DNA from: Cyanophora paradoxa CCMP329
Taxonomy: Eukaryota > Plantae > Glaucophyta
NCBI GenBank assembly: GCA_004431415.1
Contig: QPMI01000555.1
Location: 20,484-84,483 of the forward strand
Length of the DNA stretch: 64,000 nucleotides
Direction of reading: 5' to 3'
Made by a program: the position numbers and the translations under genes. A model generated the notes under the pieces. It did no database searches. It was not told where the DNA came from and saw only the letters and a list, made by a program, of their open reading frames with translations. Every line of letters starts with the position of its first letter. Position 1 is the stretch's first letter. Below, one piece after another: positions 12,137 to 40,326 of this stretch.

Positions 12137-12299
12137 TCATGCATATGATTATAATTACATTCAAATTAAATCAATTCGATCTCGATCGTGCAGCGAACTA
12201 ATTATAAGGCATCGCAACCCTACTCGCACGCGTGCAACACGTTATTCGTAATTATAATAAATCGTTTAACCCCTGGCGGGGCCAACCGCGCGCGAGCCC

Positions 12300-15200
12300 T
12301 CACATGAGGGAGCAGGCGCCGCTCTTGCCGTGGTCCCTCTTGCGGGGCGGGGCGGCGGGGGCGGCCCCGGGGGGGTCCAGGGGCGGGGGCGCCGGCAGGG
12401 GCGGCGGGACGGCCTTCGAGCCCTTGCCCCTCTTCCCCCGCCGCGAGCCGCGGGCGGCGGCCGCCTCCAGCTCCGCGATCTCCCGCTCGAGCTGCGCACG
12501 ATCTCTCTCGCTTAGGGAGAGGGGGCGGGGCCCCGCGGCGGGGCCGGCGGGGGCGCGCTGGAGGGGTGGGGTGGGGGGGGGAGGGAGGAGAGGGGGTGGA
12601 GGGTGGGTGTGGGGAGGAGGGGAGCGGGGGGGTGGGGGTGGGGGTGGGGGGTGGGTGGGGGGGGTGGGGGGGTGGGGGCGTGCCTGCTCCAGCTCGCGGT
12701 CGCTGCCGGCGATCTCCGCCTGCAGCGCCCCCGCCCGCGCCTGCACTCATAATCATGATCCGCAACGGCCCCGCGTGAGCCCTGCGCGGCGGGTAGCGTC
12801 TGTGCGCACCGCGTCCGCGGCCGACGGGGCGGCGCCTCCTGCGGGCGCCGGCGTGGCGGGGGCGTGCAGCGCGGGCGGACCCTCCGGCTTCGCCTGCGCC
12901 GCGGCGGGGCGTCAGCTGCAGCGCGAGAGGCTTGTAGGGAGGGCGGGGCGGGGCTGGGGGCGGGCGGACCGGGGCGGCGGGGCCGGGTGCCCCCAGGGAC
13001 GAGAGCAGCGCGTCGAGGGACTGCCGGCGGGGTCGGAAGAAGATAAAGGGGGGGAAGGGGAGGAGGGAGGCGGGGGTACGGCACCGGGAAGAAGCCCTCG
13101 GGCTCCTCGGCGAAGAAAGGGAACTTGCGCGTTCGCGCCAGCGAGTACTCCAGCGACGCCGGCACCTGCCGCGCGGCCTCAAAAGGGGCGGGGCGGGGCG
13201 GGGGGCTCGCTCGCCTGGAGGCTGGAGAGGAGGAGGGGCCGGACGGGCCGCCCCGCCGCCCGCGCGCGCTGCGATGCGGGGGCGCCGTGAGGCGAGCGAA
13301 AGGCCGAGCGCAGGGGCGGGCGGGCCTGGAGGCGGTCGCGGAGGAGGGGGGAGGAGGCGGAGGCGGGCGAGAGGAGCGGCACGAAGGCCGCGCACGCCGC
13401 CAGCGCAGCGTCCGCCCCCGCCTCTCCCGTCGGGTCCGCGCCCTGCGCGGCTGTGAGGGAAGATGCGAGGGTGGGTGGGGGAGGACGGGGGGTGTGGGTA
13501 CAGGGCAGTGGAGCCAGCAGGGTACGCCGCGGAAGGCGAGGGCAGAGAGGAGGGAGGCGGCGTTGCGGGCGTCCTCGGGGAGGGCCCAGGCGAGCAGGAA
13601 GGGGGCCCGCCGGGGGTCGCAGCGCGCCTCGGGCCGCGCCAGCAGCGCCTGCGCACGGCTCAGAAATGAGGAGGGGAAGAGCGGGGAAGGTGAGGGGTGA
13701 GGGGCGGGCCCGGGCGGCGTCGGCGTCGGCGGCGTCGTCGGCGGCGGCGGCGGCCTCGAGGGCGCCCCGCACCTCCGCGAGGAAGGCGGGGAAGCCCGCC
13801 TCCAGCAGCGCCGGCCTGCGCCGGACCGGGGCGGCGCTCAGGCCGGGGAGGCTTGGATTGGGCCGGGCGGGGCGGGGGCACCGCGAGAGGTCGACGATGC
13901 GGCAGCCGCGGAGGAGGCCCTGCGGGGGGTACTGTGAGGAGGGGCGGCGGGGAGGGGGTACACGCGCACGGCGGGGCGGTCGTCGAGGGGGAAGGGCGCC
14001 TCGGCCCACACGGGGAAGATCGGTCGCCCCAGGTCTGGGGGCGCTGAGAGCGAAGAGGTCCAGGCCGCAGGGAGGGCGCACCGCGGGCGCGGGAGAGCTC
14101 GAGCATGCACCAGTCCGACGCGCACGAGTGCTGCGGGAGGGGGGCGCCGCGATCAGAAGCGGAAGAGGCGGGGGAGGGGGCGCGGCGCAGCGCCCGCCTT
14201 GGAGGCGACGAAGAGGACGGCGCGGGCCGCCTTGATCCCCGCCCCGATCTGCTCCCGCCACTGCGCGCGGCTTTCAGGGGCGCCTCAGAGGGCGTTGCGG
14301 AGGCGTAGGGGCGCGCGCCTCCGTTCCGGCCTCGATGCCTGCCGGCCGCGGGGCGGAGCGAACTCGAGGTCAGGGGCGAAGCCAACTGCGAATCGAATCG
14401 CGTACCCGTCGCCTTCATCTCGTCCATCTGGCGGCGGGCAGCGCGCGTCAGCCTCGGAACGAGGGCGGAGGAGGGAATGAAAACAAAGGCGCACCCAGCA
14501 CTGCGTGGGCGAGGGTCGTGGGAGGCGCGTGCGGGGCGGAGTGAGGCCGGAGCGGAAGCCGAAGCTAGAGAGACCAGGAGAGAAATGGGGGGTACAACGG
14601 ACCGAGACCTGCTCGGCCTGGAGGCGGTCCCTCAGCTGCGCCGTGAACCGCGCCACCTCCGGCGGGTGGTGCCCGTACCTGCGTGCGTGCAGCGCGGGCG
14701 GGGGCTCAGGAAGAGAAGGAAAAGCGAGGGGGGGAGGGGAAATGAGAGGGGGGTACGCACGAGATGAAGGCGTCGCGGACGGCGGCGGCGCGCTTCAGCT
14801 GCGCGCGGTACGCCGCGTCCCGCGTCCCGTCCAGCACAGCCCTGCCGGAGCCGTTGAGGAGGGAATTCTTGGGCTTGTTCCTAGCCGTAACGCACCGCTG
14901 CTTCCCGCCGTCGGCCCCGCCGACCTGCCGCCCGATGTCCGCCCCTGCGCAGCAGCAGCAGCGGAGGCGCTCAGATCCAGCGAAAGAAAGGCGATATCAA
15001 ATAATCTCAAGAGCGGGGCGGGCCCTTCTGGAGGAGGAGTGCGCAGACGTCGAAGAGGGCGGGCCCGAAGGCGACGGCCCGCGAGAGCGCCGTCTCCTCC
15101 GCCGCGTCCGCCGCGCTGCGCGGGGGGCCCAGCGAGGCAAAGTCAAACAAATCTAAGCCTAGCCTAGGTCCAGTCCAGTTAGCCTAGCCTCAGCTAGTTA

Positions 15201-18200
15201 GGCTGGTCTAAGTTAGTTAAGGCGAAGCTTAAGCTCAGTTAAGATAAGCGCTGCGAGAGAGGCTCAGTGCGGGCCAAGTTGGGCGAGAGGTTCAGTTAGT
15301 TAGACTAGCCTAAGCAACCTAAATCTCGCACTCGACGGTCTCCGGGGTGGCGGCGGCGGCGAGGCGGAGGGCGGTGAGGCGGAGGCCGACGCGGCAGGCG
15401 GCGTGCAGCGGCGTCTCCCGGTCCCGCGCGTCCGCCTCCGCGGGGTCCTCGCGCTCCGCCTCCTCCTCCTCCTCCTCCTGGCCCCTGCAGCCCCGCCCGC
15501 CCGGCACGGGGCCGCTCAGCACACGCCGGCAATGACAGGAACCAAATCTAAGGCGCACTTCGCTTTCTTCTTCGTCTTCTTGGGGTCCTCGGGCGGCTCG
15601 GGCTCGACGCGGCCCTCGAGCCGCAGCACGCGCGCCGCCGCCGCCACCAGCGGCCCCCGCGCGTCCCCGCCCGTCTCCTCCGGCTTCAGCGCGTGGATCT
15701 CGCTGCGGCGCCGTCAGCCAGCGGCACCCTCTAGCTTTCCTGCGCGCTCGCCTGAGGCGTATCGGGCCGCGGCAGCAGAGGAGGAGGTCGGCCCACTGGC
15801 GGGCGTCCTCGGCCGCCATCTCGGACCCGTCCCGCATCGCCTCCCCCAGCGCCGTCGAGTACCTGCCCGCCCCGAGCTTCAGAGGGGGCGGGGCCGAGGG
15901 GCCTGGGGTTGAAGGCGGGACCCTTTGGCGCGGCCGGAGAGGCTGCCGTCGGCGTCGCGGCGGACGGCGGGCCAGGCGAAGCCCTCCGCCGAGACCTCCT
16001 TCAGCTCGTCCTCCAGCAGGACCCTGGGGAAGGGTTTCAGGGGGCACGGGAGGGACGGGGGAAGAGCGGAGCGCCCACCCGAGGATGTCGCGGGTCTCGG
16101 GGCCGCGGCGGTACCGCCCGCCGCCGCCCGAGCCGCAGGCGGCGGCGACGATCTCGCCCTCGTGCGCGTGGCGCCCGGCCCCGCGGCCCATCAGCAGCCG
16201 CAGCAGCTCGAGGTCGGCGGCCGCCGCCGCGATCGCCGCGGCGCTCCGGCCCTCCGCGTCGCGCGCGCCGATGTCGGCGCCGGCGTCGAGCAGCGCCCGG
16301 ACCGTCTCGAGGCCATCCTCGCCCTTGCTCGCGGCGACGGCGACGGCGACGAGCAGCGGCGTCCGCCCGCGGGCCTCGCCCCGGCCGCGGCCGCGGCCCC
16401 TCCCCTCCTCGTCATTCTCCGCGTCCTTCGCCTCCAGCGCCGCGCCCCGCTCGATCAGGAAGCTGCGAGAGGGGCGTGAGGGGCGGATGCACGCAGAAGA
16501 ACCGACGGGCGCGACGCAAGGGAAGGGCGCACCGGACGGTCTCGGCCCCCGCCTCCGCGTTGCCCGCCGCAAGGTGCAGCGCTGCGGAGGCGGCGGCGTG
16601 CTCAAGCCGCGCAGAGGCGTGAGGGCGGGGCGCGCGCGCGTGCGCACGGGAGGAGCCCTCGCAGTACTCGTTGACGTCCGCCCCGTTGTCGAGGATGAGC
16701 CTGCAGGCGCAGCCGCCGGTCGACGTCGCCCAAGGCCCGGGCAGGCCAGGCCAGCGAGCGGGCCGGCCGGCGGGGCGCGCACCGGAGGCAGGCGTCGAAG
16801 TCCTCCGCGGACTCGCCGTGCTCGCGCCGGCCCATCAGGAGCTTGTGCAGGAGCGTCTCGCCCTGCCCCGCAGAATCTCAGAATCTCATCTAAAAGTGGG
16901 GAGGGGCCCGGGGCGCGCTCGGATGTGGGGCCCGCCGCGCTCCTCGTCAGAGAGGTACGCGGGGTTCGTGTCGACCTTTCGCTCCAGGAACCACCTGCGC
17001 GGAAGGCGTCGGAAGCTCAAGCGAGGCGAAGGCGGGGCTGGGGAGGGGTACGCGGACCTGGCGACGGAGTAGACGCCGCGCGCGAGTGCGAAGGCGAGCG
17101 CCTGAGCCACGGCGGGGTGCCGCGTCGGCAGCCGCAGCCCCGCCTCCTCCAGCGCCCTGGGTACGGTGATGCAGGCCTGGGTATGGCGCGAAAGGCAGGG
17201 GAGGGGGTGGGAGGGGGTACGGGTACGCACGCGAGGATGGTGAGGCGGTTTTTCGTGTACATGCCCGAGACCTGCGGCCGGGTGAGAACGAAGAGAAAGG
17301 GGCCCCGACGGGGCTCGAACCTGGTAGAGGAGGTTCTGCTCGATGGTGCACTTGTCCTGCCAGCCGTAGAAGGGGTCGGCCCCCGCCCGCAGAAGCTCCC
17401 TGCGAGGGCGGCGTGGGCCGAACGAACAAAGAGGAACGAGACTAACGATAACAAGAGGAGATCTAGACAAATCAAAGCACTGCAGGGTCTTGAGCATCAG
17501 AGGCTCCTTCTCGCGGGCGCTCGAGGCGAGCGGCCGCATAATGGGCGTCCGGTTCGACGCGTCCGCCTGGTTTATCGGCGCCCCCGCCTCCAGCAGCGCC
17601 CTTCTCTCTCGGGTCAGACGGCGGCTCGGACGCTCAGGCGGCAAAGACGGCTCGGACGGCGCACCGGACGGAGGGTATGTCGAAGTTGAATGCGGTGGCG
17701 TGCAGGGCGGGGCACCACGCCGAGTCCAGCACGCCGCTTGCTTTCAGGGCCTGCCGGGGTACCGGGCCGCGCGCGTCAGGGCGGTCTGCGCGCCGCCGAT
17801 CGCGAGGGGGGTACGTGTACGCGCCTTGGGGTTCGCGGGGTCGGCCCCGCACTGCAGGAGGGCCCGCACGGCCTCCAGGCGCCCCTCCTTCGCCGCGAGG
17901 CCTGCCCAGATCGGATGTTGGCGCCGATTCGAGGGCCGGGGGCGCAGGGGGCCGGGTACTGACCGAGGGCGCTGTTGAGGCCGGAGTCGGGGCGGTCGAC
18001 GGGCGCCCCGCGCGAGGCGAGGAGGCGGACCACCGCCACGTGGCCGCCCCGCGCCGCCCGCTCCAGCGCCGAGTAGCCCGCCAGCACGTACTCGGGCGGG
18101 GGCGGCCGCCCCTCCGCCTCGTCCTCCTCCTCCTGCTCCGGCGTGCGCCTGGGCGGGGGCACCCCCTCGACCTCGCCGGGGTCCGCCCCCCTCTCCAGCA

Positions 18201-18912
18201 GCTCCCGCACGCAGCCGAGGTGCCCGTTGCCCGCCGCCATCAGCAGCGGCGTGAGCCACGCGCTGTTCTCCTTCACGCGGCGTCGCGGGTCGGCGCCGGC
18301 GTCGAGGGCGACGCGGAGGCAGGCGGCCGAGCCCTCGCGCGCGGAGCCCGCCGCGATGCTCTCGACCACCTCCGCGGGGGGCGCCGCCCTCGCCACCAGC
18401 TCCCTGCGCGCCCGCCCGCCGCCCCTCAGAAAGACAGAGAGAGAGAGAGGCGGCCCGAAGACCTAGACCGCGGGGGAGGGGTGCACCGGAGGACTTCGAA
18501 GTGGCCGCCCAGCGCGGCCAGCTCGTAGGGCCCCGCCTTGTGCCCGTGCCGCGCCCCCGGCGAGGCGCCCCGCGCCAGCAGCTCCCTGGCCCCGCCCGCC
18601 GCCTGTCAGAAAGACAGGCGAGAAAGAGAGAGGGCGCGCGGGCCTCCTCAGAGAGAGATTGCGCACCGGACGAGCTCAAGGTCGCCGCGCTCGGCGGCGA
18701 GGGGCAGCGCCGCCTCAGGCGCCCTCGCCCCTTCCTCCTCCACAGCGTACGCCGCGTCGTCCACGGGGCAGCCGAGCTCCAGGAGCGCCCTGGCAGCAAG
18801 CGCGTAAAGGGACCAGCGGGCACCGGGGCGGGCGGAAGGGACGGCGCGCGCACACTGAGACTCCTCGCGGCCCAGGCCCCACTGGATGAGCGTCTAGCGG
18901 CGTCGCCGCCAT
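12300..18912 (-). CDS. Ankyrin-repeat - TIR - pseudo-TIR - coiled-coil - CaaX protein (complete copy, many short exons)
   Basis: ATG 18912. Ankyrin motifs include LPLAAERGDLELVRELLARGA, TPLLMAAGNGHLGCVRELLERGAD, SALERAARGGHVAVVRLL, GRTPLLVA and ETPLHAAC. TIR at ~14780-13760 splices to DAFISYGHHPPEVARFTAQLRDRLQAEQVSCWMDEMKATGIEAGTEWREQIGAGIKAARAVLFVASKHSCASDWCMLELSRARDLGRPIFPVW. A second TIR-like domain lies at ~13640-13090. The C-terminus reads LEREIAELE...RRGKRGK...GACSLM*. Confidence 0.85.
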
Positions 18913-20691
18913 GTCTAGCGGCGCGGGGCCCGGGTCCCGCGAGTGATCGGAACCGGCGATGTACCGCAATTGCAAGTTTGCGTCGGCGTGCGGCGCGTCG
19001 AGCAGCGCGCTGCAAGCGGAGAAAGATCGAAAGTCAGCGCCAGGCTCAAGCCCGAAGCTAAGAGGCGCGGCGCTGGGAGGCGTACCGTGCCGCATATGCA
19101 TGCGCAGCGCCTGGAGAAGCACGGCCTGGGCCGCCTCACGGATCGACGCCTGGCGTGCAATCCATTTGCATCATGGCATCGAGCCACGCGCGCGCGCCGC
19201 GGGGCGCGCGCCGTAAGCTGTAACTCGGCGGCGCCGCACGAGCTCGCAAGCACTGCGAGCCGCGACGGTTATTCAAGTGCAGAAAGACGACATAGAGAGA
19301 GCGCACCGGCAACCACCTCATGATCAGAGCGCATTGCGAAGCCCGAGGAGCGAAGCGAACGGGCGAGCGCGGTACCCCAAGCCGGCGCAAAAAAGATCGT
19401 GCGTGACAGCATCTCGCTCCACAGCGTGCGGGCGAGCAGCTGGACGGGAGAATGCGCTCATTCGCGGTTCCAGAGCACGATTGGCCTGTCTCGGAAGCGC
19501 CGCCCACGGCAATCCCGCCTCGCAAGCCGCCGCCTCGCACGCCGCCGCCTCGTGCCCCGCCTTGAGGAACCTTCGAGCACGTTGAGCTGCCTTCTTGGAT
19601 CGTCCGCAGCCGGCTGAACCGCGCGCGGTCTGCAAACAGCTAGGGCTGCATCGCAGCTAGGGCGGCATGAGCCGCCTGCAGCTGTCGATTCATTCGCGAT
19701 CCTGAGCGTGCTCTGGTCGGTCACCCCTGCACCCGTTCTCGGCGGCGCGCAGTATCTCACCCGTACGCGTGCACCCATCGCGCAGAGCTAGCGGGCCGCC
19801 CGGCATCCGGTGATGCGGATGTAGGTGCTCGTCGCACGCTGCTCTTGCTGGTGAGCGGATCCGAAGCCCGTGGCCGCGGCCGCGCGCGTCTCACCCGAAC
19901 CACGCAGCCTGTCATCCTTCGCGCGGGGCGGAGACTCGCAGCCTGAGGGCTGCGTGGTTCGGGTGAGAGACGCGCTTCCCTGGCGCCTGCTCGCAGCTGC
20001 GTGAGGAGGATTGGCGCTACTGATCCGCCGCGCGGCTCGCCGCCCCCGAGCCGCGGCCGCCATTCCACCGCGCCCCGCCCCGCCCCGCCGGCGCCGTCGC
20101 CCCGCTGTCCGGCGGCCCCAGCCCACTGCTCCGGCTCCAGTCGTCAGCTAGCGCCAGGCCAGCGCCTCTCTTTCTACGTTCAGTGCCTCCGCCCGCCGCT
20201 CCCAGCGGCACTGTGCCGCGGCCGGCTTCTAGCGCTAGCACGCTGCCCCAACGTTTACCACTATCGAGTTTCCGCGTGCTGTAGCCTATAGCTATGTCAC
20301 ATCATGTTCTGCAGGCTGCAGCTATGTGAAAAGCGGCTTTGTGTGAAAAGCGGACCCTGCGGGATCCGAGCTCGGTACCGAAAAAACCGGGACGCCATAG
20401 TAAAAAACCGGGACATGTCCCCGGTTTTTACTATGGCGGCGGCCGGATCAAGTTGCAAACTGGCCCATACAAAAAACCGGGACGGGAGTCGCCTCCTTTT
20501 CGCGGCGAAATGGAAGGCCCGAAACTGAGGCCGCGGGGGGCGAGCGCAAAACGTTAACGCGAGCGCAATCATGATCATGATCACTTGGGGCGCCGCCCAC
20601 AGCTGCAGGCCAGCTGGTCCCTAGCGCTAGCCTCAGCCTGGCAGGGCTTCAGCCTGGCGGCCCGCCGGGCCGGGCTTAGGGCTGGCCCGGG
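13033..20691. repeat. Segmental duplication copy 1 (partner 32686-38545 joined to 48506-50238)
   Basis: Collinear match including introns. The partner is interrupted by 9,960 bp. Confidence 0.95.
20393..20438. repeat. 46-bp near-perfect palindrome with flanking AAAAAACCGGGAC repeats (second copy 49943-49988); likely DNA-transposon subterminal remnant
   Basis: cgccatagtaaaaaaccgggacatgtccccggtttttactatggcg; the aaaaaaccgggac motif also occurs at 20381 and ~20472. Confidence 0.8.
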
Positions 20692-21070: not shown

Positions 21071-21393
21071 TCACATGAGGGAGCAGGCGCCGCTCTTGCC
21101 GTGGTCCCTCTTGCGGGGCGGGGCGGCGGGGGCGGCCCCGGGGGGGGTCCAGGGGCGGGGGCGCCGGCAGGGGCGGCGGGACGGCCCTCGAGCCCTTGCC
21201 CCTCTTCCCCCGCCGCGAGCCGCGGGCGGCGGCCGCCTCCAGCTCCGCAATCTCCCGCTCCAGCTGCGCGCGATCTCTCTCGCTCAGGAAGAGGGGCGGG
21301 GGCCCGCGGCGGGGCCGGCGGGCGCGCGCGCGCGCCTGCTCGAGCTCGCGGTCGCTGCCGGCGATCTCCGCCTGCAGCGCCCCCGCCCGCGCC
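21071..21393 (-). pseudogene. 3' fragment of ANK-TIR gene (coiled coil + CaaX exons)
   Basis: Matches 12300-12745 and ends GACSLM*. Confidence 0.85.
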
Positions 21394-21524
21394 TGCGCCG
21401 GACAACGGCCCCTTGTGAGCCCTTTCGGACAGGCGCGCGGCGGGCGGCGCTTGCGCCCACCGCGACTCCGGGAGTCCGGGTCCACCCCGAGTCCGGCCGG
21501 CCCGGCGGAGCAGCACTGCGCATG

Positions 21525-22075
21525 CGGCAGGAGTACAAGTACGGAATGAATCCTCGCGATCGGACCCGGGGACGAGTCTCGCGATCGTTATGAAGAGGTG
21601 GCAGAGGTGCGCTGCTGGTCGTGACTCGTGACCGCTAGCGCTGTCTGCCCGACTAATTAGTTATAATTGCGCATGCAAGAACCACCGCGATCGACTCGCG
21701 CTCGAGCTCGCGCTCACGCCTGGGGCCCGGCAGGCCCTGAGGACCAGGAATATATGCGGGCCGGGCTTGCGCGTGGAGCGCGCATCATGATCATGATCAG
21801 GACGCGTACGCGTTCCCGCTTGATGTAGATGCGACTTGTATTCGTGCGCGTGCACGTGCGCATGCCGCTGGAATTTGAAGCGCGTGAAAGCTAAGATCGA
21901 TATCGATATCGAATCCGCATCTGACGCACGTACAGCTGCAGGGGCCGGCCGGCCCAGCGGGAAGCTGTACATGTGGCGCCGGCGGCGAGCCAGTCGGTGC
22001 AGCATGCGCAAGAGCTGGCGGCGTTGGCGCGCGCGATATTGATGACGGTCACCTATCTTCGATTTCAACGCCTTG
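21525..22075 (+). pseudogene. Degenerate partial copy of the 11342-12136 gene
   Basis: Shares caggagta...ggaatgaatcctcg...tatgaagaggtg and downstream blocks, with many small insertions. Confidence 0.7.
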
Positions 22076-22255: not shown

Positions 22256-23600
22256 TCACATGAGGGAGCAGGCGCCGCTCTTGCCGTGGTCCCTCTTGCG
22301 GGGCGGGGCGGCCGGGGCGGCCCCGGGGGGTCGACGTCCAGGGCGGGGGCGCCGGCAGGGCGGCGGGACGGTCTTCGAGCCCTTGCCCCTCTTCCCCCGC
22401 CGGAAAATCGCGGGGGTGGGGGTAGGCTCTTGTCGTCAGATCGACCCGACCCGAGGTTGATGTGCGGATTTCCGCTTTTTTGATCTGATCTTCTCGATTT
22501 TCGGTGCGGTTTTCGCATCGGCGGAGTCGAAAACCCTTCAAGGCTTATTAGTCACAGAAGGGACGGGCTTGCACTTTAATTTCCTCGGTGAAGGCGCGAA
22601 GCGCCTGGAAGGGAGGGCGCGAAGCGCCTGAAAGCTCGGCGCTTTTTCGCTTAGTTTAGGTCGTTTTTTGCTGTAGAATCACAGGTACCCCCTCCCACTG
22701 GCGCCACTGAGTGGGGTGCCAGTGGGGGGGGGCCACTGACTCAGTGGGGTCGGACCCCCACTACGCCCACCCCTAGCCGCGGGCGGCGGCCGCCTCCAGC
22801 TCCGCGATCTCCCGCTCCAGCTGCGCGCGATCTCTCTCGCTTAGGGAGAGGGGGCGGGCCCCGCGCGGGGCCGGCGGGGGGGCGCGCGCCTGCTCGAGCT
22901 CGCGGTCGCTGCCGGCGATCTCCGCCTGCAGCGCCCCCGCCCGCGCCTGCGCCGGACAACGGCCCCGCGTGAGGTCTTTGGGGCAGACGCGCCAGCGGCT
23001 GGACTCGCGCACCGCGTCCGGGGCCGACGGGGCGGCGCCTCCGGCGGGCGCCGACGTGGCGGGGGCGTGCAGCGCGGGCGGACCCTCCGGCTTCGCCTGC
23101 GCCGCGGCGGGGCGTCAGCTGCAGCGCGAGAGGCTTGTGAGGGAGGGCGGGGCGGGGCGGGCGGACCGGGGCGACGGGGGCCGGTGCCCCCAGGGACGAG
23201 AGCAGCGCGTCGAGGGACTGCCGGCGAGGTCGAAGGAAGAAGAAGCGGGGGGGGGAAGAAGGCGGGGGTACGGCACCGGGAAGAAGGCCTCGGGCTCGTC
23301 GGCGAAGAAGGGGAACTTGCGCGTGCGCGCCAGCGAGTACTCCAGCGACGCCGGCACCTGCCGCGCGGCCTCAAAAGGTGCGGGGCGGGGCGGGGTGCGC
23401 GCTCGCCTGGAGGCTGGAGAGGAGGATCGGGAGGGGCCGCGGCCGGACGGGCCGCCCCGCTGCCCGGGCGCGCTGCGGGGGCGCCGTGCCACGGTGAGCG
23501 AATTAAAGCAGAGCGGAGCGGAGCAAAGGGGCGGGCAGGCCTGCATGGAGGCGGTCGCGGAGCTTGAGGAGGCCTAGGGGGGAGGAGGCGGAGGCCGCGC
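22256..23600 (-). pseudogene. Longer 3' fragment of ANK-TIR gene (end of pseudo-TIR to CaaX), interrupted by insertion 22403-22774
   Basis: Matches 12300-13380 (VPASLEYSLARTRKFPFFADEPEAFFP; GACSLM*). Confidence 0.85.
22403..22774. mobile_element. ~370-bp inserted non-autonomous element fragment
   Basis: Absent at the homologous site (cttcccccgccg...gccgcggg) in copies at 12440 and 21215. Contains ggcgcgaagcgcc twice and cccact/agtggg repeats, and ends ...cccaccccta (hAT-like terminus). Confidence 0.55.
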
Positions 23601-24148
23601 CAGCGAGAGGAGCGCGCGGCACGCAGCCCAGTCGACGTCCCCCTCGAGCTCTGAGCCGGCTGAAAAGCTTCGAAATCGATAGGTGAGCAACGCGATATGC
23701 ACCGAACTGCGCTCCCCGCACTGCTAGAGCCTGCCCCTCCCCCCGGCGTGTCTGTAGCGCTGTACCCCCTCTTAGTAGGAAAAAAAAGAGTAACAGGAGT
23801 AGTAGGAGTAAGGTAAAAGTAAAGCGCCAGCCAGCCGCTGAGCCAGCCAGGCCTCGCGCTAGCGCTGGCCGGGGTCCGGGGCCGGCCGCGGCCTATAGGC
23901 CGGAGCTCGCGATCGAGGGCCGGGCCCAGCCGCGGCCTATAGCTACTGGCGGCCAGCCTCCAGCTAGGAGCCGATGACTTGGTCAGGCCAGCTGGCCAGC
24001 TCAAGCCGGGGGGCCGGGGCCGGCCGCGCGCGGTCCTATAGGCTATATATAGCTACTGGCGGCCAGCCTCCAGCTACCGTGTAACACTTATTTACTGCGC
24101 CACAAATTACTGCGTTCTAAAATAACACTGGCGGCCAGCCTCCAGCTA

Positions 24149-24372
24149 CCGTGTAACACTTATTTACTGCGCCAGAGTTTTTTTTCTGCGCCGGTAGGCG
24201 CTTTACTGCGCCACCAAATTACTGCGTTCCATCGGCCTCGGAAAATATTATACTGGGGTAATAGGCCAAGGGGGTATTACTGCGCTACCAAATTACTGCG
24301 TTCTTAAATTTTTGAGCGCAGTAATATGGTAGCGCAGTAGTTATGTCAGCGCGGTAATTAAGTATTACACGG
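24149..24372. mobile_element. Tc1/mariner-type MITE with ~24-bp TIRs flanked by TA
   Basis: TA-ccgtgtaacacttatttactgcgc ... gcgcggtaattaagtattacacgg-TA with internal ttactgcg repeats. An empty-site version (ccagctaggagccgatgac) lies at ~23960 and a partial duplicated left end at 24077-24127. Confidence 0.85.
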
Positions 24373-25303
24373 TATAAGCTAGGAGCCGATGACTTGGTCA
24401 GGCCAGCTGGCCAGCCGACCAGCCGCAATTAATTATACAGCAAATGAATTCGACGTTGTTAGATGAATTCGAAATCGGTGTCTTATAATCAGAAACACTT
24501 CGTGACTTTTAATTTACGACTATAGCTAGCTCCTACTAGGCTAGCCAGCCTAGCTAGCCAGCTGCAGCCCGAAATTCGGCTCGACTCGCGGAGAGCAGCT
24601 GTAGGCTGTAGCTAATTTAATTGGCCAATTGCAATGCCCCTGATCATGATCATGATCATGAGCTATAGCTAGCCCCAATTTTTGCCCCCAGTGCCCCCCC
24701 CCCCATCCCCCCCCCGGGCCCGTGCCCCGGTATACGTACGTATATACCGGCGCACGCGCGTGTGTGCGAAATAGCCAGCTAGGCTAGCTGCTATATATAG
24801 CTATTGCTAGCGGTGTGTGCCAGCTATAGCTATAGCGCTAGCTAGCGCTAGCTATAGCTAGCTGCAGCCTGCAGCTGCTGCGCATGCAGCTGCAGCTGCC
24901 GGCCGGCGGCGGGCTGCATATATATGCATGCGCATGCCATCATATATATGCATATGCATGGCATAATGCGCATGCGCGCGCGCGCAGGCGCCCGGCCGGC
25001 TAGCGCTATAGCTAGCGCTGCAGGCTCATGATCATGATCGATCATGATCAGCGGCTGCCGCGCGCAGTACTAGCTATACTGTGCATGCCGGCGCGCGCGC
25101 GCGGCTGCAGCCGCGCGCGCGCCTCATAATCGATATCATGATCAGCGGCCTGCCGCATGCATATGCATGCGCATGCGCATGCGCAGTGCACTGCAGCTCA
25201 GCGGCTGCCCTGCGCTGCAGTCTGCAGATCTAGATCTTCACGCCGATCGATATCTACTACCGCACCGCTAGCCTACCGGTAGGCCCTAGCTAGGCCTGAG
25301 GCT

Positions 25304-26115
25304 AGCGTTGCCGACCGTCGGACTCGGCGAGTTTACGCCGACTCGACGCCGAGTCGACGCCGACTTGACGCCGAGTCGGCGCCGACTTGACGCCGAGTCG
25401 GCGTCGATTCGGCGTCGATCGACGTCGACTCGGCGAGTTTTATCAATCAAATAATTTGGATGAATTCGAATTAGACACTTGAGAATACCAGTTTTTCACA
25501 CGACTCGTGTGACATGTACACGAGCCACCTGGCTGAAGCGACCGTCGGTCCCGGCGTCGCCGCGTCGGACATATGCATTGCTGCGACAGTGATGATGAGT
25601 GTCATTGAGTGTCATTGGTACGCCGGACCGTCGCCAGAACCTACTAGTAGGCTACTAGTATGCCTATTAGTAGTCCGCGCTTACTAGTCCGCCAAAATGG
25701 CCAACTTGCAAGTTGCAAGTCTTAAAACTTGAAAAATGCACTTCAAGTTTTAAAATCTACTAGGCTAGAGTTGCAAGTTGCAACTTGCAACTTCAAGGCT
25801 TGCAAGCCTTGAAGTTGCACGCTTAAGTTGGCCATTTGGGCTACTGTACAGTGTACTATGATATTCGCTGCATATATAATTCGCATATGCATCCGGGCCG
25901 CGGCCCGCGGGCCGTGATGATATCATAGTATCGATATGATCCGTCATTGACATCTATCCGGCGGATTCCGGCCCGTATACGTAATATTACGTATACGTAC
26001 GGGCCGGTACGGCCCCGAGGCAGTATATATCCGATGATCCGGCCCCGGCGGCCCGTACCTTACCGTACCGTACCGTACCGTATGCCCGTATACGTACCGT
26101 ATAAAACTGTACGTG
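25304..26115. repeat. Cluster of short-period subterminal-type repeats (11-bp gacgccgagtc array 25320-25440; ttgcaag array 25700-25830; ccgta array 25975-26115)
   Basis: Directly visible tandem and inverted motifs; possible hAT-like termini tagcgttgccgac and tagagttgcaag. Confidence 0.55.
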
Positions 26116-26562
26116 GAACCCTCCCTCATAATTATGCGAAACACTGGAGCCCGAATCGAAATTAGTGGATGTAAAATTTTCAGGCTTGTATTGGATGGTA
26201 ATTAAGGGGGGTATAGTATGAGGCGCCTCTCATCAGGGAATCGGTCCCAAATTTGTGGACTGAGTCAAGATTTCGGTGGACTGTGGACTAATACAAATTT
26301 AAACATAGAGCCCCATACAAACATACAAAACGCGAAGACGCGTTCTTTGGTTTCAAGTTTCCTGTTAGGTTTTCCCATGCAAACGCGAAGACGCGTTCTT
26401 TGCCAGCCATGCACTGGCATGCAGTGGCCCACTGGAACATGCTTGACATGTACAGCTCTTAAGCTTGAACATGCCATGGCCAGCCACCCTCATGCTTCAA
26501 TGATGCTTGAACATGTACAGCTTTTAAGTTAACACTTACTAAGTTAGCAGCACGGGCAGCCT

Positions 26563-32343: not shown

Positions 32344-32685
32344 TTGTTCAACAAAGGCCGTTGATTTTTCGTTGATTTGCCTTTTCAACCGGGAAAGGAA
32401 AGAAATGAAAAGTGTGCGTGTGGGAGCGAAGACGTCACTATGCATATGAAAGGACTGGCGCATTTCATGTTCTGGAGGTGCGCATGCCTGGGCCGCCTCG
32501 TCGGTCGAGGCGTGCACTAACGCCGGCGGCGTCGGCGTGCGACTCCACGACGGGTCAGACGGCTGCGCATGCGGGGCTGGGGCATGCGCCGGGGCGCGGG
32601 GGCGGCGGGATGGCGGGTACAGGAGAGACAGAGTGGCCGGCCGCGAAGGGGGCACCGCCGGAGCGGGCACTGCCGCCAGAGGCAC

Positions 32686-35600
32686 TCGGAAGAAGATGAA
32701 GGGGGGGGGGAGGAGGAAGGCGGGGGTACGGCACCGGGAAGAAGCCCTCGGGCTCTTCGGCGAAGAAGGGGAACTTGCGCGTTCGCGCCAGCGAGTACTC
32801 GAGCGACGCCGGCACCTGTCCGGCGGGGCGGCCTAAGCTTCAGACGGGGCGGGGCGGGGGGCGCGCTCGCCTGGAGGCTGGAGAGGAGGAGGGGCCGGAC
32901 GGGCCGCCCCGCCGCCCGCGCGCGCTGCGAAGCGGGGGCACAGTGAGGCGACAGAAAGGTCGAGCGCAGGGGCGGGCGGGCCTGGAGGCGGTCGCGGAGG
33001 AGGGGGGAGGAGGCGGAGGCGGGCGAGAGGAGCGGCACGAAGGCCGCGCACGCCGCCAGCGCAGCGTCCGCCCCCGCCTCTCCCGTCGGGTCCGCGCCCT
33101 GCGCGGCTGTGAGGGAAGATGCGAGGGTGGGTGGGGGAGGACGGGGGGTGTGGGTACAGGGCAGTGGAGCCAACAGGGCACGCCGCGGAAGGCGAGGGCA
33201 GAGAGGAGGGAGGCGGCGTTGCGGGCGTCCTCGGGCAGGGCCCAGGCGAGCAGGAAGGGGGCCCGCCGGGGGTCGCAGCGCGCCTCGGGCCGCGCCAGCA
33301 GCGCCTGCGCACGGCTCAGAAATGAGGAGGGGAAGAGCGGGGAAGGTGAGGGGTGAGGGGCGGGCCCGGGCGGCGTCGGCGTCGGCGGCGTCGTCGGCGG
33401 CGGCGGCGGCCTCGAGGGCGCCCCGCACCTCCGCGAGGAAGGCGGGGAAGCCCGCCTCCAGCAGCGCCGGCCTGCGCCGGACCGGGGCGGCGCTCAGGCC
33501 GGGGAGGCTTGGATTGGGCCGGGCGGGGCGGGGGCACCGCGAGAGGTCGACGATGCGGCAGCCGCGGAGGAGGCCCTGCGGGGGTACTGTGAGGAGGGGC
33601 GGCGGGGAGGGGGTACACGCGCACGGCGGGGCGGTCGTCGAGGGGGAAGGGCGCCTCGGCCCACACGGGGAAGATCGGTCGCCCCAGGTCTGGGGGCGCT
33701 GAGAACGAAGAGGTCCAGGCCGCAGGGAGGGCGCACCGCGGGCGCGGGAGAGCTCGAGCATGCACCAGTCCGACGCGCACGAGTGCTGCGGGAGGAGGGC
33801 GCTGCGATCAGAAGCGGAAGAGGCGGGGGAGGGGGCGCGGCGCAGCGCCCGCCTTGGAGGCGACGAAGATGACGGCGCGGGCCGCTTTGATGCCCGCCCC
33901 GATCTGCTCCCGCCACTGCGCGCGGCTTTCAGGGGCGCCTCAGAGGGCGTTGCGGAGGCGTAGGGGCGCGCGCCTCCGTTCCGGCCTCGATGCCTGCCGG
34001 CCGCGGGGCGGAGCGAACTCGAGGTCAGGGGCGAAGCCAACTGCGAATCGCATCGCGTACCCGTCGCCTTCATTTCGTCCATCTGGCGGCGGGCAGCGCG
34101 CGTCAGCCTCGGAACGGGGGCGGAGGAGCGGATTGAAACAAAGGCGCACCCAGCACTGCGGGGGCGAGGGTCGCGGGGGGCGCGTGCGGGGCGGAGTGAG
34201 GCCGAGTCGAGTGGGGAGACGGGGCGAGGGGACGGCGGAAGAGAAAGCGGAAGGAGGACGGACCGAGACCTGCTCGGCCTGGAGGCGGTCCCTCAGCTGC
34301 GCCGTGAACCGCGCCACCTCCGGCGGGTGGTGCCCGTACCTGCGCGCGCGCAGCGCGGGCGGGGGCTCAGGAAGAGAAGGAAAAGCGGAGGGGGGAGGGG
34401 AAATGAGAGGGGGATACGCACGAGATGAAGGCGTCGCGGACGGCGGCGGCGCGCTTCAGCTGCGCGCGGTACGCCGCGTCCCGCGTCCCGTCCAGCACAG
34501 CCCTGCCGGAGCCGTTGAGGAGGGATTTCTTGGGCTCGTTCCTAGCAGTAGAGGTCTCGGGGCGCACCGCTGCTTCCCGCCGTCGGCCCCGCCGACCTGC
34601 CGCCCGATGTCCGCCCCTGCGCAGCAGCAGCGGAGCCGCTCAGATCCAGCGAAAGAAAGGCGATATCAAATAATTTCGAGAAGCGGGGCTCGCGCGCCCT
34701 TCTGGAGGAGGAGGGCGCAGACGTCGAAGAGGGCGGGCCCGAAGGCGACGGCCCGCGAGAGGGCCGTCTCCTCCGCCGCGTCCACCGCGCTGCGCGGGGG
34801 GCCCAGCGAGGCCAAGTTGGGCGAGAGGTCCGGTTGGCCTAGCCTAAGCTAGGTAGGCTGGTCTAAGTTGGGCGAGAGAGGTTCAGTTAGTTAGACTAGC
34901 CTGAGCTATACACATAGCGCACTCGACGGTCTCCGGGGTGGCGGCGGCGGCGAGGCGGAGGGCCGTGAGGCGGAGGCCGACGCGGCAGGCGGCGTGCAGC
35001 GGCGTCTCCCGGTCCCGCGCGTCCGCCTCGGCGGGGTCCTCCTGCTCCGCCTCCTCCTCCTCGTCCTCCTGGCCCCTGCAGCCCCGCCCGCCCGGCACGG
35101 GCCCGCTCAGCGTACGCCGGCAATGACAGGAACCGAAGCGAGGGCGCACTTTGCTTTCTTCTTCGTCTTCTTGGGGTCCTCGGGCGGCTCCGGCTCGACG
35201 CGGCCCTCGAGCCGCAGCACGCGCGTCGCCGCCGCCACGAGCGGCCCCCGCGCGTCCCCGCCCGTGTCCTCCGGCTTCAGCGCGTGGATCTCGCTGCGGC
35301 GCCGTCAGCCAGCGGCACCCTCTAGCTTTCCTGCGCGCTCGCCTGAGGCGTATCGGGCCGCGGCAGCAGAGGAGGAGGTCGGCCCACTGGCGGGCGTCCT
35401 CGGCCGCCATCTCGGACCCGTCCCGCATCGCCTCCCCCAGCGCCGTCGAGTACCTTCCCGCCGCGAGCTTCAGAGGGATCGGGGCCGAGGGGAGGGGCCT
35501 GGGGCTGAAGGCGGGACCCTTTGGCGCGGCCGGAGAGGCTGCCGTCGGCGTCGCGGCGGACGGCGGGCCAGGCGAAGCCCTCAACGGAAACCTCCTTCAG

Positions 35601-38498
35601 CTCGTCCTCCAGCAGGACTCTGGGGAAGGGTTTCAGAGGGGTACGGGACGGGATGAGAGCGGGGCGCCCACCCGAGGATGTCGCGGGTCTCGGGGCCGCG
35701 GCGGTACCGCCCGCCGCCGCCCGAGCCGCAGGCGGCAGCGACGATCTCGCCCTCGTGCGCGTGGCGCCCGGCCCCGCGGCCCATCAGCAGCCGCAGCAGC
35801 TCGAGGTCGGCGGCGGCCGCTGCGATCGCCGCGGCGCTCCGGCCCTCCGCGTCGCGCGCGCCGATGTCGGCGCCGGCGTCGAGCAGCGCCCGGACCGTCT
35901 CGAGGCCATCCTCGCCCTTGCTCGCGGCGACGGCGACGAGCAGCGGCGTCCGCCCGCGGGCCTCGCCCCGGCCGCGGCCCCTGCCCCTCCCCTCCTCCTC
36001 CTTCTCCGCATCCTTCGCCTCCAGCGCCGCGCCCCGCTCGATCAGGAAGCTGCGAGAGGGGCGTGAGGGGCGGATGCACGCAGAAGAACCGACGGGCGCG
36101 ACGCAAGGGAAGGGCGCACCGGACGGTCTCGGCCCCCGCCTCCGCGTTGCCCGCCGCAAGGTGCAGCGCTGCGGAGGCGGCGGCGTGCTCAAGCCGCGCA
36201 GAGGCGTGAGGGCGGGGCGCGCGCGCGTGCGCACGGGAGGAGCCCTCGCAGTACTCGTTGACGTCCGCCCCGTTGTCGAGGATCAGCCTGCAGGCGCAGG
36301 CGCCGGTCGACGTCGCCCAAGGCCCGGGCAGGCCAGGCCAGCGAGCGGGCCGGCCGGCGGGGCGCGCACCGGAGGCAGGCGTCGAAGTCCTCCGCGGACT
36401 CGCCGTGCTCGCGCCGGCCCATCAGGAGCTTGTGCAGGAGCGTCTCGCCCTGCCCCGCAGAATCTCAGAATCTCATCTAAAAGTGGGGAGGGGCCCGGGG
36501 CGCGCTCGGATGTGGGGCCCGCCGCGCTCCTCGTCAGAGAGGTACGCGAGGTTCGTGTCGACCTTTCGCTCCAGGAACCACCTGCGCGGAAGGCGTCGGA
36601 AGCTCAAGCGAGGCGAAGGCGGGGCTGGGGAGGGGTACGCGGACCTGGCGACGGAGTAGACGCCGCGCGCGAGTGCGAAGGCGAGCGCCTGAGCCACGGC
36701 GGGGTGCCGCGTCGGCAGCCGCAGCCCCGCCTCCTCCAGCGCCCTGGGTACGGTGATGCAGGCCTGGGTATGGCGCGAAAGGCAGGGGAGGGGGTGGGAG
36801 GGGGTACGGGTACGCACGCGAGGATGGTGAGGCGGTTTTTCGTGTACATGCCCGAGACCTGCGGCCGGGTGAGAACGAAGGAAAAAGGGCCCCGACGGGG
36901 CTCGAACCTGGTAGAGGAGGTTCTGCTCGATGGTGCACGTGTCCTGCCATCCGTAGAAGGGGTCGGCCCCCGCCCGCAGAAGCTCCCTGCGAGGGTGGCG
37001 TGGGCCGAACGAACAAAGAGGAGCGAGACTAACGATAACAAGAGGAGATCTAGACAAATCAAAGCACTGCAGGGTCTTGAGCATCAGAGGCGCCTTCTCG
37101 TGGGCGCTCGAGGCGAGCGGCCGCATGATGGGCGTCCGGTTCGACGCGTCCGCCTGGTTGACCGGCGCCCCCGCCTCCAGCAGCGCCCTTCTCTCTCGGG
37201 TCAGACGGCGGCTCGGACGCTCAGGCGGCAAAGACGGCTCGGACGGCGCACCGGACGGAGGGTATGTCGAAGTTGAACGCGGCGGCGTGCAGGGCGGGGC
37301 ACCACGCCGAGTCCAGCACGCCGCTCGCTTTCAGGGCCTGCCGGGGTACAGGTCCGCGCGCGTCAGGGCGGTCTGCACGCCGCCGATCGCGAGGGGGGTA
37401 CGTGTACGCGCATTGGGGTTCGCGGGATCGGCCCCGCACTGCAGGAGGGCCCGCACGGCCTCCAGGCGCCCCTCCTTCGCCGCGAGGCCTGCCCCGATTG
37501 GATGTTGGCGCCGATTCGAGGGCCGGGGGCGCAGGGGGCCGGGCACTGACCGAGGGCGCTGTTGAGGCCGGAGTCGGGGCGGTCGACGGGCGCCCCGCGC
37601 GAGGCGAGGAGGCGGACCACCGCCGCGTGGCCGCCCCGCGCCGCCCGCTCCAGCGCCGAGTAGCCCGCCAGCACGTACTCGGGCGGGGGCGGCCGCCCCT
37701 CCGCCTCGTCCTCCTCCTCCTGCTCCGGCGTGCGCCTGGGCGGGGGCACCCCCTCGACCTCGCCGGGGTCCGCCCCCCTCTCCAGCAGCTCCCGCACGCA
37801 GCCGAGGTGCCCGTTCCCCGCCGCCATCAGCAGCGGCGTGAGCCACGCGCTGTTCTCCTTCACGCGGCGTCGCGGGTCGGCGCCGGCGTCGAGGGCGACG
37901 CGGAGGCAGGCGGCCGAGCCCTCGCGCGCGGAGCCCGCCGCGATGCTCTCGACCACCTCCGCGGGGGCGCCGCCCTCGCCACCAGCTCCCTGCGCGCCCG
38001 CCCGCCGCCCCTCAGAAAGACAGAGAGAGAGAGAGAGGCGGCCCGAAGACCTAGACCGCGGGGAGGGGTGCACCGGAGGACTTCGAAGTGGCCGCCCAGC
38101 GCGGCCAGCTCGTAGGGCCCCGCCTTGTGCCCGTGCCGCGCCCCGGCGAGGCGCCCCGCGCCAGCAGCTCCCTGGCCCCGCCCGCCGCCTGTCAGAAAGA
38201 CAGGCGAGAAAGAGAGAGGGCGCGCGGGCCTCCTCAGAGAGAGATTGCGCACCGGACGAGCTCAAGGTCGCCGCGCTCGGCGGCGAGGGGCAGCGCCGCC
38301 TCAGGCGCCCTCGCCCCTTCCTCCTCCACAGCGTACGCCGCGTCGTCCACGGGGCAGCCGAGCTCCAGGAGCGCCCTGGCAGCAAGCGCGTAAAGGGACC
38401 AGCGGGCACCGGGGCGGGCGGAAGGGACGGCGCGCGCACACTGAGACTCCTCGCGGCCCAGGCCCCACTGGATGAGCGTCTAGCGGCGTCGCCGCCAT
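32686..38498 (-). pseudogene. Second ANK-TIR gene copy, lacking coiled-coil/CaaX end and separated from its upstream region
   Basis: Collinear with 13033-18912, with ATG at 38498 and SDWCMLEL kept. Homology stops at 32686. Two 1-bp homopolymer losses in exons (37963-37967, 38141-38144) could be sequencing error. Confidence 0.75.
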
Positions 38499-40260: not shown

Positions 40261-40326
40261 GCCGCCCCGAGGCCGCACTCCGTCGGAGTGCCCGCTGCGC
40301 ATGCCGGCCGCCTCGCGATCGATCGC

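Follow-up and report, generated by a model that had tools for sequence, protein, structure and literature searches.

The locus examined here, in a 64,000-nt window of Cyanophora paradoxa CCMP329 (contig QPMI01000555.1, positions 20,484 to 84,483), raises the question of whether many small exons on the minus strand join ankyrin repeats, TIR domains and a C-terminal CaaX box in one protein, and what such a protein would do. TIR domains are the enzymatic core that bacteria, plants and animals share in their immune signalling. A sequence-only reading of the window had proposed this chain for a protist or alga; the host is an alga, the glaucophyte C. paradoxa, and the gene is nuclear, expressed and intron-rich. 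When the window was re-read, all of the quoted peptides lay at the minus-strand places given for them (Table 1). The same reading had called the gene hidden, which it was not, as it is already in the public protein set (EukProt EP00741, tig00021116_g18416.t1, here P0102) with Ank and TIR_2 Pfam matches. Between 18915 and 12303, P0102 ran colinear with the window, its exon peptides being 100% identical, and it spanned the 5' half of the gene without breaks; the 5' exon map was taken from this public model. Public models of the paralogues use the ATG at 18912 as their start, and these models, rather than reads, are the basis for its placement. P0102 kept introns that RNA splices out, and retained a 102-nt intron ahead of the Cys-Trp (CW) microexon.

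Table 1. Features of the ankyrin-TIR locus, in positions of the window.
Feature	Position	Strand	Basis
Whole gene (copy 1); ATG 18912-18910, stop 12302-12300	12300..18912	-	public model tig00021116_g18416.t1 (P0102, 1386 aa)
Ankyrin-repeat array, ~870 aa with low-complexity inserts	15024..18912	-	Pfam Ank/Ank_2 and RNA contigs
Ankyrin exons in RNA (among others)	17963-18279+, 17480-17599, 16078-16462, 15752-15860, 15559-15702, 15332-15484, 15024-15115	-	
TIR1 and N-terminal helix, ten exons	13710..14841	-	exon table and RNA joints
TIR1 exons	14841-14761, 14678-14603, 14500-14495 (CW), 14427-14406, 14338-14319, 14260-14198, 14130-14082, 14034-13964, 13931-13882, 13815-13710	-	
6-nt microexon TGCTGG (Cys-Trp), strand B of TIR1	14500-14495	-	AG/GT flanks; RNA contig joint
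TIR1 peptides	WREQI 14260-14246; VLFVAS 14218-14201; WCMLE 14112-14098; PIFPV 14023-14009	-	
GAG codon, putative catalytic Glu of SDWCMLEL (W-x3-E)	14098..14100	-	alignment with AbTir
TIR2 (pseudo-TIR), exons 13648-13502, 13442-13326, 13268-13215, 13165-13085	13085..13648	-	predicted fold
Arg codon at the catalytic-Glu position of TIR2 (SSPLLRDRL)	13332..13334	-	alignment
Coiled coil, first half (ARAGALQAEIAGSDRELEQ)	12684..12740	-	exon table; kept in paralogues (A3)
Last exon: coiled coil remainder (LEREIAELEAAAARG), basic patch, Pro-rich linker, RKRDHGKSGA, CSLM, stop	12300..12557	-	exon table, RNA depth
Basic patch SRRGKRGKGSK	12446-12414	-	
CaaX box CSLM, then TGA	12314-12303, stop to 12300	-	
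Paralogue copy 2 (public models P0100, P0099)	32558..38498	-	sequence comparison
Two orphan 3' tails of the ANK-TIR family	22259-23600 and 21074-21590	-	each ends ...KRDHGKSGACSLM*

The proposed exon chain was compared with RNA contigs. Eleven displayed splice joints were present in contigs of runs X1, X4 and X7 and absent from DNA run X9, and introns at all joints seen in RNA resolved to GT-AG or GC-AG on the minus strand. Spliced at these junctions, the 22 exons between 15702 and 12300 followed a single reading phase that ended in CSLM*. Between 14428 and 14603 an RNA contig carried 5 letters matching the 6-nt CW microexon, and the 92-nt bridging exon at 15115-15024 was joined upstream to the ankyrin exon at 15332+ (X7 contig) and downstream, in an X1 contig, to the exons that run into strand A of the TIR. 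The claim that tiny exons splice in phase from the ankyrin repeats through a TIR and a TIR-like domain to a coiled coil and CSLM was thus borne out by the RNA joints, the microexon and the link between ankyrin and TIR exons among them. This RNA evidence consists of contigs and not of single reads, with no single displayed contig covering the entire gene, and contigs are not assignable among near-identical paralogues, some of them bearing copy-2 or third-copy letters. A contig of run X4 had copy-1 letters at 13118 and 13151, and transcription of copy 1 itself is likely. One 3' intron had two candidate acceptors, 12557 or 12491, both of which keep the frame, and the RNA evidence for the last exon consists of depth over it, outside the displayed joints.

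Several other routes to the exon map were set aside. A stop-free frame was rejected as proof of the chain, as a junk frame in this 73% GC DNA was also stop-free over 714 codons. An attempt to use splice rules and the lengths of contigs to derive the ankyrin exons not seen in RNA was abandoned because dozens of solutions fit, and comparison of copy 1 with copy 2 failed to delimit the 5' exons, that half being 99.6% identical, introns included. The 1780 nt of RNA contig lying 5' of 18279, considered as further copy-1 exons, fit best with the longer paralogue P0101 and its 544 additional N-terminal residues.

The long ankyrin array described from sequence was recovered by Pfam both in window ORFs (17779-18462, minus strand, Ank E 5e-13 and Ank_2 E 1.5e-09; 15322-17016, minus strand, Ank E 3e-06) and in P0102, where Ank_2 matched with E 4.6e-42 in 4 stretches. 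Among paralogues the ankyrin part varied in length from 298 to 1314 aa and in identity from undetectable to 52%, excluding the closest, P0101 (94%). A word-based search with one ankyrin exon returned generic ankyrin proteins only.

Domain evidence for the TIR region rests on the public models P0101 and P0102, and structure models of both TIRs were built from P0101 ranges. TIR_2 (PF13676) matched P0102 with 61.9 bits (E 1.1e-16; cut-off 28) and P0101, near-identical to the gene in its TIR exon peptides (ex04-ex17), with 75.9 bits (E 5.1e-21). The same profile was above its gathering score in all paralogues tested except P0099, an intron-retaining model (20.9 bits). Single TIR exons gave nothing in Pfam, or E 0.099 at best, because they encode only 6-49 aa. 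With the 364-aa stop-free ORF that covers the TIR region as query, an exhaustive HMMER search retrieved P0099 as its sole protein. The modelled TIR1 fold matched the SPARTA TIR with Z 16.2 (8ifl_A, rmsd 2.5, 130 aligned residues) and the SARM1 TIR with Z 15.8, and profile matches in the PDB were the AbTir NADase (E 2e-4) and PdTIR. The Glu of SDWCMLEL aligned with that of AbTir DWTNYEL (PDB 7uwg/8g83). Thus a TIR domain with a Glu in the WCxxEL helix, at the codon that the sequence-only reading had named, was found by profile, fold and alignment alike, and the Pfam and structure checks suggested there came out in favour of a TIR with P0101 and P0102 as proxies. The motifs [AV]FISY and S[DE]WC..E[LV] occurred in 12/12 paralogues, in all of which the W-x3-E Glu and the preceding Trp were invariant. 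A conserved Glu is required for TIR NADase activity and is insufficient alone. The ThsB_TIR profile of Thoeris was seen below cut-off in one paralogue, P0108 (19.2 vs 21.2 bits), and no ThsA-like gene lay within the window.

The second TIR-like domain claimed for this protein also proved to have a TIR fold, with Arg in place of Glu. Its model, from an identical P0101 stretch, reached pLDDT 83 and pTM 0.81, and in VIA the TIR2 fold matched the SPARTA TIR with Z 15.2 and the SARM1 TIR with Z 13.8, nearly all of the top 50 matches being TIR domains. The best Foldseek match was 5for, the "Cryptic TIR" of BCAP. The TIR2 profile alone was not significant against PDB sequences (best TIR match E 0.26). 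The Arg was invariant in the 8 aligned paralogues (alignment A1, R281). As modelled, TIR2 is a true TIR fold that is predicted to be catalytically disabled by this Arg, and the fixation of Arg here while the TIR1 Glu is kept in every paralogue suggests that the latter is under selection for chemistry. The TIR-TIR module, which comes directly after the ankyrin array, was 44-60% identical among paralogues (P0101 aside). A tandem model (pTM 0.46) left the mutual orientation of TIR1 and TIR2 undefined, and complex prediction of one against the other scored 0.00, which carries no weight either way.

The coiled coil, polybasic patch and terminal CSLM described for the tail were all present; the patch, however, lies ~35 residues N-terminal to the CaaX box, and the coil has only ~4 heptads, with a flexible linker between coil and box. 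Use of acceptor 12491 would yield an unbroken 4-heptad coil like those of paralogues P0101 and P0104. CSLM has its Cys at -4, an aliphatic a2 and an X from the set M/S/Q/A/C, and stands at the true C-terminus. A CaaX box ended 6 models whose tails were otherwise 27-60% identical (CSLM twice, CALM twice, CIVM and CSVS). The box is kept in the family whereas the basic patch is not, and in one paralogue the residues ahead of the box form an acidic stretch. Human FTase farnesylates CSIM, CAIM and similar CxxM boxes completely (PMC11152559).

The gene belongs to a family of at least 12 lineage-specific paralogues, and ten independent public models on different contigs combined ANK and TIR_2 in one protein. 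Copy 2 was 95-99.6% identical to copy 1 from the ATG to exon VPASLEYSLARTRKFPFF, beyond which it was unrelated, with neither coiled coil nor CaaX box. Divergence across the two copies was 1.7% in exons and 8.3% in introns, the latter with many indels in addition; the exon differences comprised 16 synonymous vs 7 non-synonymous changes (9 vs 1 in the TIR exons), a sign of purifying selection. Three tails in the window ended identically in ...KRDHGKSGACSLM*. Word-based searches found no relative of the TIR-TIR-tail module outside Cyanophora. A 10-kb satellite insertion was observed at the locus, Rfam matched nothing in the window, and Pfam matched nothing in ORFs of the low-GC block at 24000-32500. 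Paralogue model P0106 carries a fused P5CR gene.

The protein had been described as lacking an NB-ARC, LRR or transmembrane scaffold. In agreement with this, Pfam reported only Ank- and TIR-family matches in P0102 and 11 paralogues (the P5CR fusion of P0106 aside), and neither NB-ARC nor NACHT among them; SAM or ARM matches were also absent, so that only the TIR fold is common with SARM1. NADase TIRs (AbTir, PdTIR, SARM1, plant RUN1/RPV1 and SPARTA TIR-APAZ) share with this protein the TIR_2 match and the fold (Z 15-16, rmsd 2.3-2.8 over 125-141 residues), and with TIR1 a helix-C Glu four residues past the Trp. In contrast to them, the Cyanophora protein adds an ankyrin array, a dead second TIR and a CaaX tail, and is without the SAM/ARM of SARM1, the NB-ARC-LRR of plant TNLs or the Argonaute partner of SPARTA. 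Fold matches included the Arabidopsis RPS4/RRS1 TIRs (4c6r, 4c6s and 4c6t), where, as an analogy only, an active TIR is regulated by an inactive partner TIR; those TIRs sit on two NLR proteins, whereas in Cyanophora both are in one chain with a helix-linker between them. TIR adaptors can be held at a membrane without a transmembrane helix, by N-myristoylation in TRAM or by a PIP2-binding basic motif in MAL/TIRAP, although these anchors are N-terminal and the Cyanophora CaaX is C-terminal. The literature searched yielded neither a TIR protein with a CaaX at its C-terminus nor papers on Cyanophora TIR proteins.

The architecture had not been recognised as a characterised one; at the level of the ankyrin-TIR fusion it has precedents. 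The parts are of known kinds, and such fusions occur in bacteria, in oomycetes and, as BCAP, in vertebrates. Those of oomycetes are mentioned in a review as uncharacterised (PMC9153377), and these and the bacterial P0083 carry an ankyrin array and TIR_2 in one chain without an NTPase, like the Cyanophora protein; P0083 differs in its N-terminal TIR and in having no second TIR or CaaX. The vertebrate TIR-DBB-ankyrin proteins BCAP and BANK1 also combine TIR and ankyrin (PMC5241739), but in reversed order, with a DBB and without a tandem TIR or lipid anchor, and they are adaptors, not enzymes.

With somewhat more confidence than doubt, we read the locus as an expressed C. paradoxa ANK-TIR-pseudoTIR-CaaX gene for a putative farnesyl-anchored, ankyrin-gated TIR NADase in which TIR2 acts as partner or brake. 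The CaaX cysteine would be farnesylated, placing the protein on the cytosolic face of a membrane, where the coiled coil and TIR-TIR contacts could bring copies together and the ankyrin array, on binding a ligand or partner, could gate their assembly. Like AbTir, SARM1 and plant TIRs, TIR1 would then cleave NAD+, yielding ADP-ribose or a cyclic isomer of ADPR. The dead TIR2 may be a built-in partner or brake for TIR1, a cis version of what the RRS1 TIR does to the RPS4 TIR in trans, and defence or stress signalling is the likely context.

Chemistry and anchoring are where other explanations enter. Were the protein a scaffold or adaptor, its TIRs would serve homotypic assembly, as in MyD88, MAL and BCAP, and its ankyrins would recruit partners to the membrane with no NAD+ chemistry. 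The cryptic BCAP TIR at the top of the TIR2 Foldseek list would fit this, as would the Z values of MyD88, MAL, SIGIRR and IL-1R-family TIRs, which fall within about 1-2 units of those of NADase TIRs, and the clearly non-catalytic nature predicted for one of the two domains. We nevertheless consider it unlikely, given that Glu and Trp are invariant in TIR1 while the TIR2 position is fixed as Arg, and that the best sequence matches are the NADase TIRs AbTir and PdTIR. A soluble TIR enzyme or adaptor whose CSLM is not used for prenylation seems quite improbable: the conserved C-a-a-M/S ends of six paralogues with otherwise divergent tails and the identical ends of three window tails argue against it, and the models that lack the box (P0103, P0106 and P0110) are either truncated or merged with an adjacent gene, even though the patch lies far from the box and is not kept in the family and the tail is absent from copy 2 and several models.

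The integrity of copy 1 bears on the remaining two. Its setting, with a truncated copy, two orphan tails and the satellite insertion, could be that of a transcribed pseudogene that is decaying within a rearranging cluster of copies, beside paralogues that alone are functional, and the RNA contigs are not assignable to copy 1 with certainty. Against this, all 22 exons checked keep an intact frame up to the stop, P0102 covers the 5' half unbroken, conservation is 5 times higher in exons than in introns, synonymous changes are in excess, and the X4 contig bears copy-1 letters, so that we regard decay as very unlikely. That the ankyrin and TIR parts are separate genes and their chain an artefact is scarcely credible; it could draw on the use of contigs rather than reads and on the lack of one displayed contig spanning the whole gene, but exon 15115-15024 is spliced on both sides and ten independent public models unite ANK with TIR_2.

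The analysis corrects the TIR region of the public gene model, which had kept introns and missed microexons there, and delimits the family; the practical gain is modest for now. A broader proposal, which we put forward tentatively and consider rather doubtful, is that glaucophytes have an NLR-independent immune or stress system in which diversifying, farnesyl-anchored ankyrin sensors are coupled in cis to an active/dead TIR pair that would generate an NAD+-derived signal or deplete NAD+ at the membrane. If true, this would be a third wiring of TIR enzymes to sensors besides NLRs and transmembrane receptors, and the first that is prenyl-anchored. The family is a compact case on TIR-sensor wiring in early-branching Archaeplastida, with variable repeats and, all conserved, a catalytic-type TIR, a dead TIR in the same chain and a lipid-anchor signal; should activity and anchor both prove real, it would place TIR NADase signalling in a glaucophyte and offer a natural system for the role of a built-in pseudo-TIR.

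Our analysis demonstrated the architecture, conservation pattern and expression of an ankyrin-TIR gene type in Cyanophora paradoxa, represented by the gene at 12300-18912 on the minus strand (copy 1). All peptides quoted in the sequence-only reading were found at their coordinates, including the Glu codon of WCMLE (14100-14098, minus strand) and CSLM plus stop (12314-12300, minus strand). As the GC content was ~73% across the region, long stop-free frames are frequent and carry little meaning, and openness of the frame was given no weight because a wrong phase tried earlier was stop-free too. Briefly, RNA-type contigs (three runs) and DNA contigs (one run) were aligned to 12280-18279; splice joints were present in the RNA runs and absent from the DNA run, and 100% of the displayed local joints were GT-AG or GC-AG introns on the minus strand after shifts within their stated ambiguity. 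With the RNA-displayed junctions and four more deduced from splice signals and reading frame, 22 exons from 15702 to 12300 follow a single phase that ends in CSLM and a stop. One RNA contig had 5 letters between 14428 and 14603, which corresponds exactly to the suggested 6-nt microexon TGCTGG (14500-14495). GC-AG introns were unusually common in the 3' half (7/21 at 12300-15751, minus strand; 5 of these 7 directly in RNA contigs), the TIR domain contained microexons of 6, 20 and 22 nt, and the inferred intron at 13963-13932 was only 32 nt long.

Introns and C-terminal features of the copy 1 gene
Feature	Position	Strand	Evidence
Intron	12969-12894	minus	RNA contig joint
Intron	13084-13021	minus	RNA contig joint
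Intron	13214-13166	minus	RNA contig joint
Intron	13501-13443	minus	RNA contig joint
Intron	14081-14035	minus	RNA contig joint
Intron	14197-14131	minus	RNA contig joint
Intron	14318-14261	minus	RNA contig joint
Intron	14760-14679	minus	RNA contig joint
Intron	14895-14842	minus	RNA contig joint
Intron	15023-14945	minus	RNA contig joint
Intron	15331-15116	minus	RNA contig joint
Intron	15751-15703	minus	RNA contig joint
Short heptad stretch	3' of TIR2	minus	Unbroken 4-3 L/I spacing with 12491 acceptor
Basic patch SRRGKRGKGSK	3' of heptad stretch	minus	Exon sequence
Pro-rich linker	Between basic patch and C-terminal ending	minus	Exon sequence
C-terminal ending RKRDHGKSGACSLM	Protein end	minus	Exon sequence

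The ankyrin and TIR parts, read earlier as one protein, were indeed joined in spliced RNA by the 92-nt exon 15115-15024. A contig of RNA-type run X7, extending through 16462, spliced this exon to the upstream ankyrin exon 15332+ (short side 58 nt), and a single contig of run X1 (sides 49-51) carried it downstream via 14944-14896 and 14841-14761 into the exon opening TIR strand A. Another contig of ~870 nt ran across TIR2, connecting TIR1 exon 11 with the tail. Some RNA contigs bore letters of copy 2 (the paralogue at 32558-38498, minus strand) or of a third copy; since contigs of near-identical paralogues are not separable with certainty, the splicing pattern holds for the gene type, and transcription of copy 1 itself is likely rather than proven. 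Independent support for the exon chain came from the low exon and high intron divergence between the two copies: over 13033-15702, divergence was 1.7% in exons against 8.3% in introns, the latter with 117 indel positions in addition. Exon differences were 16 synonymous versus 7 non-synonymous overall, and 9 versus 1 in the TIR exons.

The stop-free ORF spanning the TIR region matched a single protein when searched exhaustively with HMMER, P0099 (EP00741_Cyanophora_paradoxa, tig00000171_g10958.t1), and word-based searches with P0099 and one paralogue returned 12 proteins, all from C. paradoxa. Precomputed Pfam annotation listed Ank and TIR_2 in all of these except P0099. The gene had been described as hidden; it is in fact in the public set as P0102 (tig00021116_g18416.t1, 1386 aa), whose exon peptides all match colinearly at 100% identity between 18915 and 12303, and copy 2 corresponds to models P0100 (g18418) and P0099. 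P0102 keeps two introns, one of 102 nt ahead of the CW microexon and a Pro-rich one of 126 nt in the tail; it also has a truncated exon 13 and differs from the RNA-supported chain in the splice between 15332 and 15115. The near-identical paralogue P0101 follows that chain over 14841-13085 except for 20 extra residues between the exon 13 and 14 peptides; 10 of the 12 exon peptides with sufficient length for comparison were 100% identical over their full length. For the spliced protein, P0101 and P0102 ranges served as proxies below.

Ankyrin repeats were detected directly from window ORFs (Ank, E 5e-13), and the TIR_2 profile confirmed TIR1: P0102 (61.9 bits), P0101 (75.9 bits) and the other tested paralogues (52-95 bits) exceeded the gathering score, except P0099, whose intron-retaining model scored 20.9 bits, under that threshold. 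Against PDB sequences, the family profile matched the AbTir NADase (E 2e-4) and PdTIR, with the Glu of SDWCMLEL paired with that of DWTNYEL. The tandem TIR1-TIR2 model reached pLDDT 74 overall (85-92 in the cores), and the predicted TIR1 fold matched SPARTA, SARM1, RPV1 and RUN1 TIRs at Z 15-16. Modelled separately (pLDDT 83, pTM 0.81), TIR2, noted earlier as TIR-like, was predicted to adopt a TIR fold (Z 13-15 to TIR domains, which made up nearly all of the best 50 rows), with the BCAP "cryptic TIR" as best Foldseek match. In the family alignment, the TIR1 motifs [AV]FISY and S[DE]WC..E[LV] occurred in 12/12 members, and the TIR2 residue equivalent to the TIR1 Glu was an invariant Arg.

The 12491 acceptor, which would give the heptad stretch its unbroken spacing, is the one used in the models of P0101 and P0104, another family member. 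Among six models the tails were 27-60% identical, yet all closed in CSLM, CALM, CIVM or CSVS; models lacking a CaaX box were either truncated or merged with an adjacent gene. Of the proposed polybasic patch and CaaX signal, the box is conserved in the family and the patch is not. The last 16 residues were identical in three tails within the window. Boxes of the CxxM type serve farnesyltransferase well as substrates (PMC11152559).

The locus is duplicated at 95-97% identity (13033-18960 versus 32686-38546). The upstream flank 18959-20664 matches 48505-50219, separated from copy 2 by a 10-kb satellite block inserted at 38546-48505, 47 nt upstream of the ATG (160-nt unit, 39423-40354; 139-nt unit, 40826-47500); its empty site is visible in copy 1 at 18959/18960, and the 139-nt satellite recurs at the window end (62754-64000). 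The copies are 99.6% identical, introns included, in the 5' half (16463-18960 versus 36050-38546) and ~95% identical in the 3' half (13033-16077 versus 32686-35660), a mosaic that suggests recent gene conversion. Copy 2 homology stops directly past exon VPASLEYSLARTRKFPFF (32686), next to a block of ~8 kb (24000-32686) with a GC content of just 48-53%; the plus-strand ORFs of this block (up to 348 aa) had no Pfam match, and it may be an insertion severing the CaaX tail of copy 2. Copy 2 lacks one base of a C-run in TIR exon 12 (33579, equivalent to 13924 in copy 1), owing to either a frameshift or a homopolymer error of long reads. Between the full copies lie two orphan 3' fragments on the minus strand (21074-21590 and 22259-23600), holding the end of TIR2, the coiled coil and the terminal KRDHGKSGACSLM with a stop; they are rearrangement relics or spare tails. 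Upstream of the copy 1 ATG, the frame is still ankyrin-like (18901-19050, minus strand; ALLDAPHADAN...RDPGPAPLDMAA), with 64% identity to residues 59-106 of the longer P0101, and copy 1 appears to have lost ~380 N-terminal residues through deletion. The window start carries a direct duplication of ~2.3 kb (20-2392 versus 4261-6607, 85-91% identity).

Uncharacterised ankyrin-TIR fusions are on record in oomycetes (PMC9153377). BCAP and BANK1 also combine TIR and ankyrin domains, but in an order reversed relative to the Cyanophora gene, and the bacterial TIR_2-ANK protein P0083 is a further precedent for both in one protein. Tandem TIR-like architectures (DUF4062/TIR) occur in bacteria in the ESM Atlas, and TRAM and MAL are membrane-tethered TIR adaptors. 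The architecture, earlier not recognised as a characterised one, is therefore known in its parts, and the gene is already annotated at gene-model level; a protein uniting a conserved cis pseudo-TIR and a conserved C-terminal CaaX box was not described in the literature searched, which also yielded no paper on TIR proteins of Cyanophora. We regard the significance of the gene as moderate and hinging on biochemistry.

In the proposed mechanism, the protein would be farnesylated and reside at the membrane, the ankyrin array would sense a ligand, TIR1 would cleave NAD+ in a Glu-dependent manner and TIR2 may act as partner or brake. Among paralogues other than the closest, P0101 (94% identical in the ankyrin part), the ankyrin part (298-1314 aa) ranged from undetectable similarity to 52% identity, whereas the TIR-TIR module retained 44-60%; this variable ankyrin part beside a conserved TIR-TIR module fits a putative sensing role of the ankyrins.
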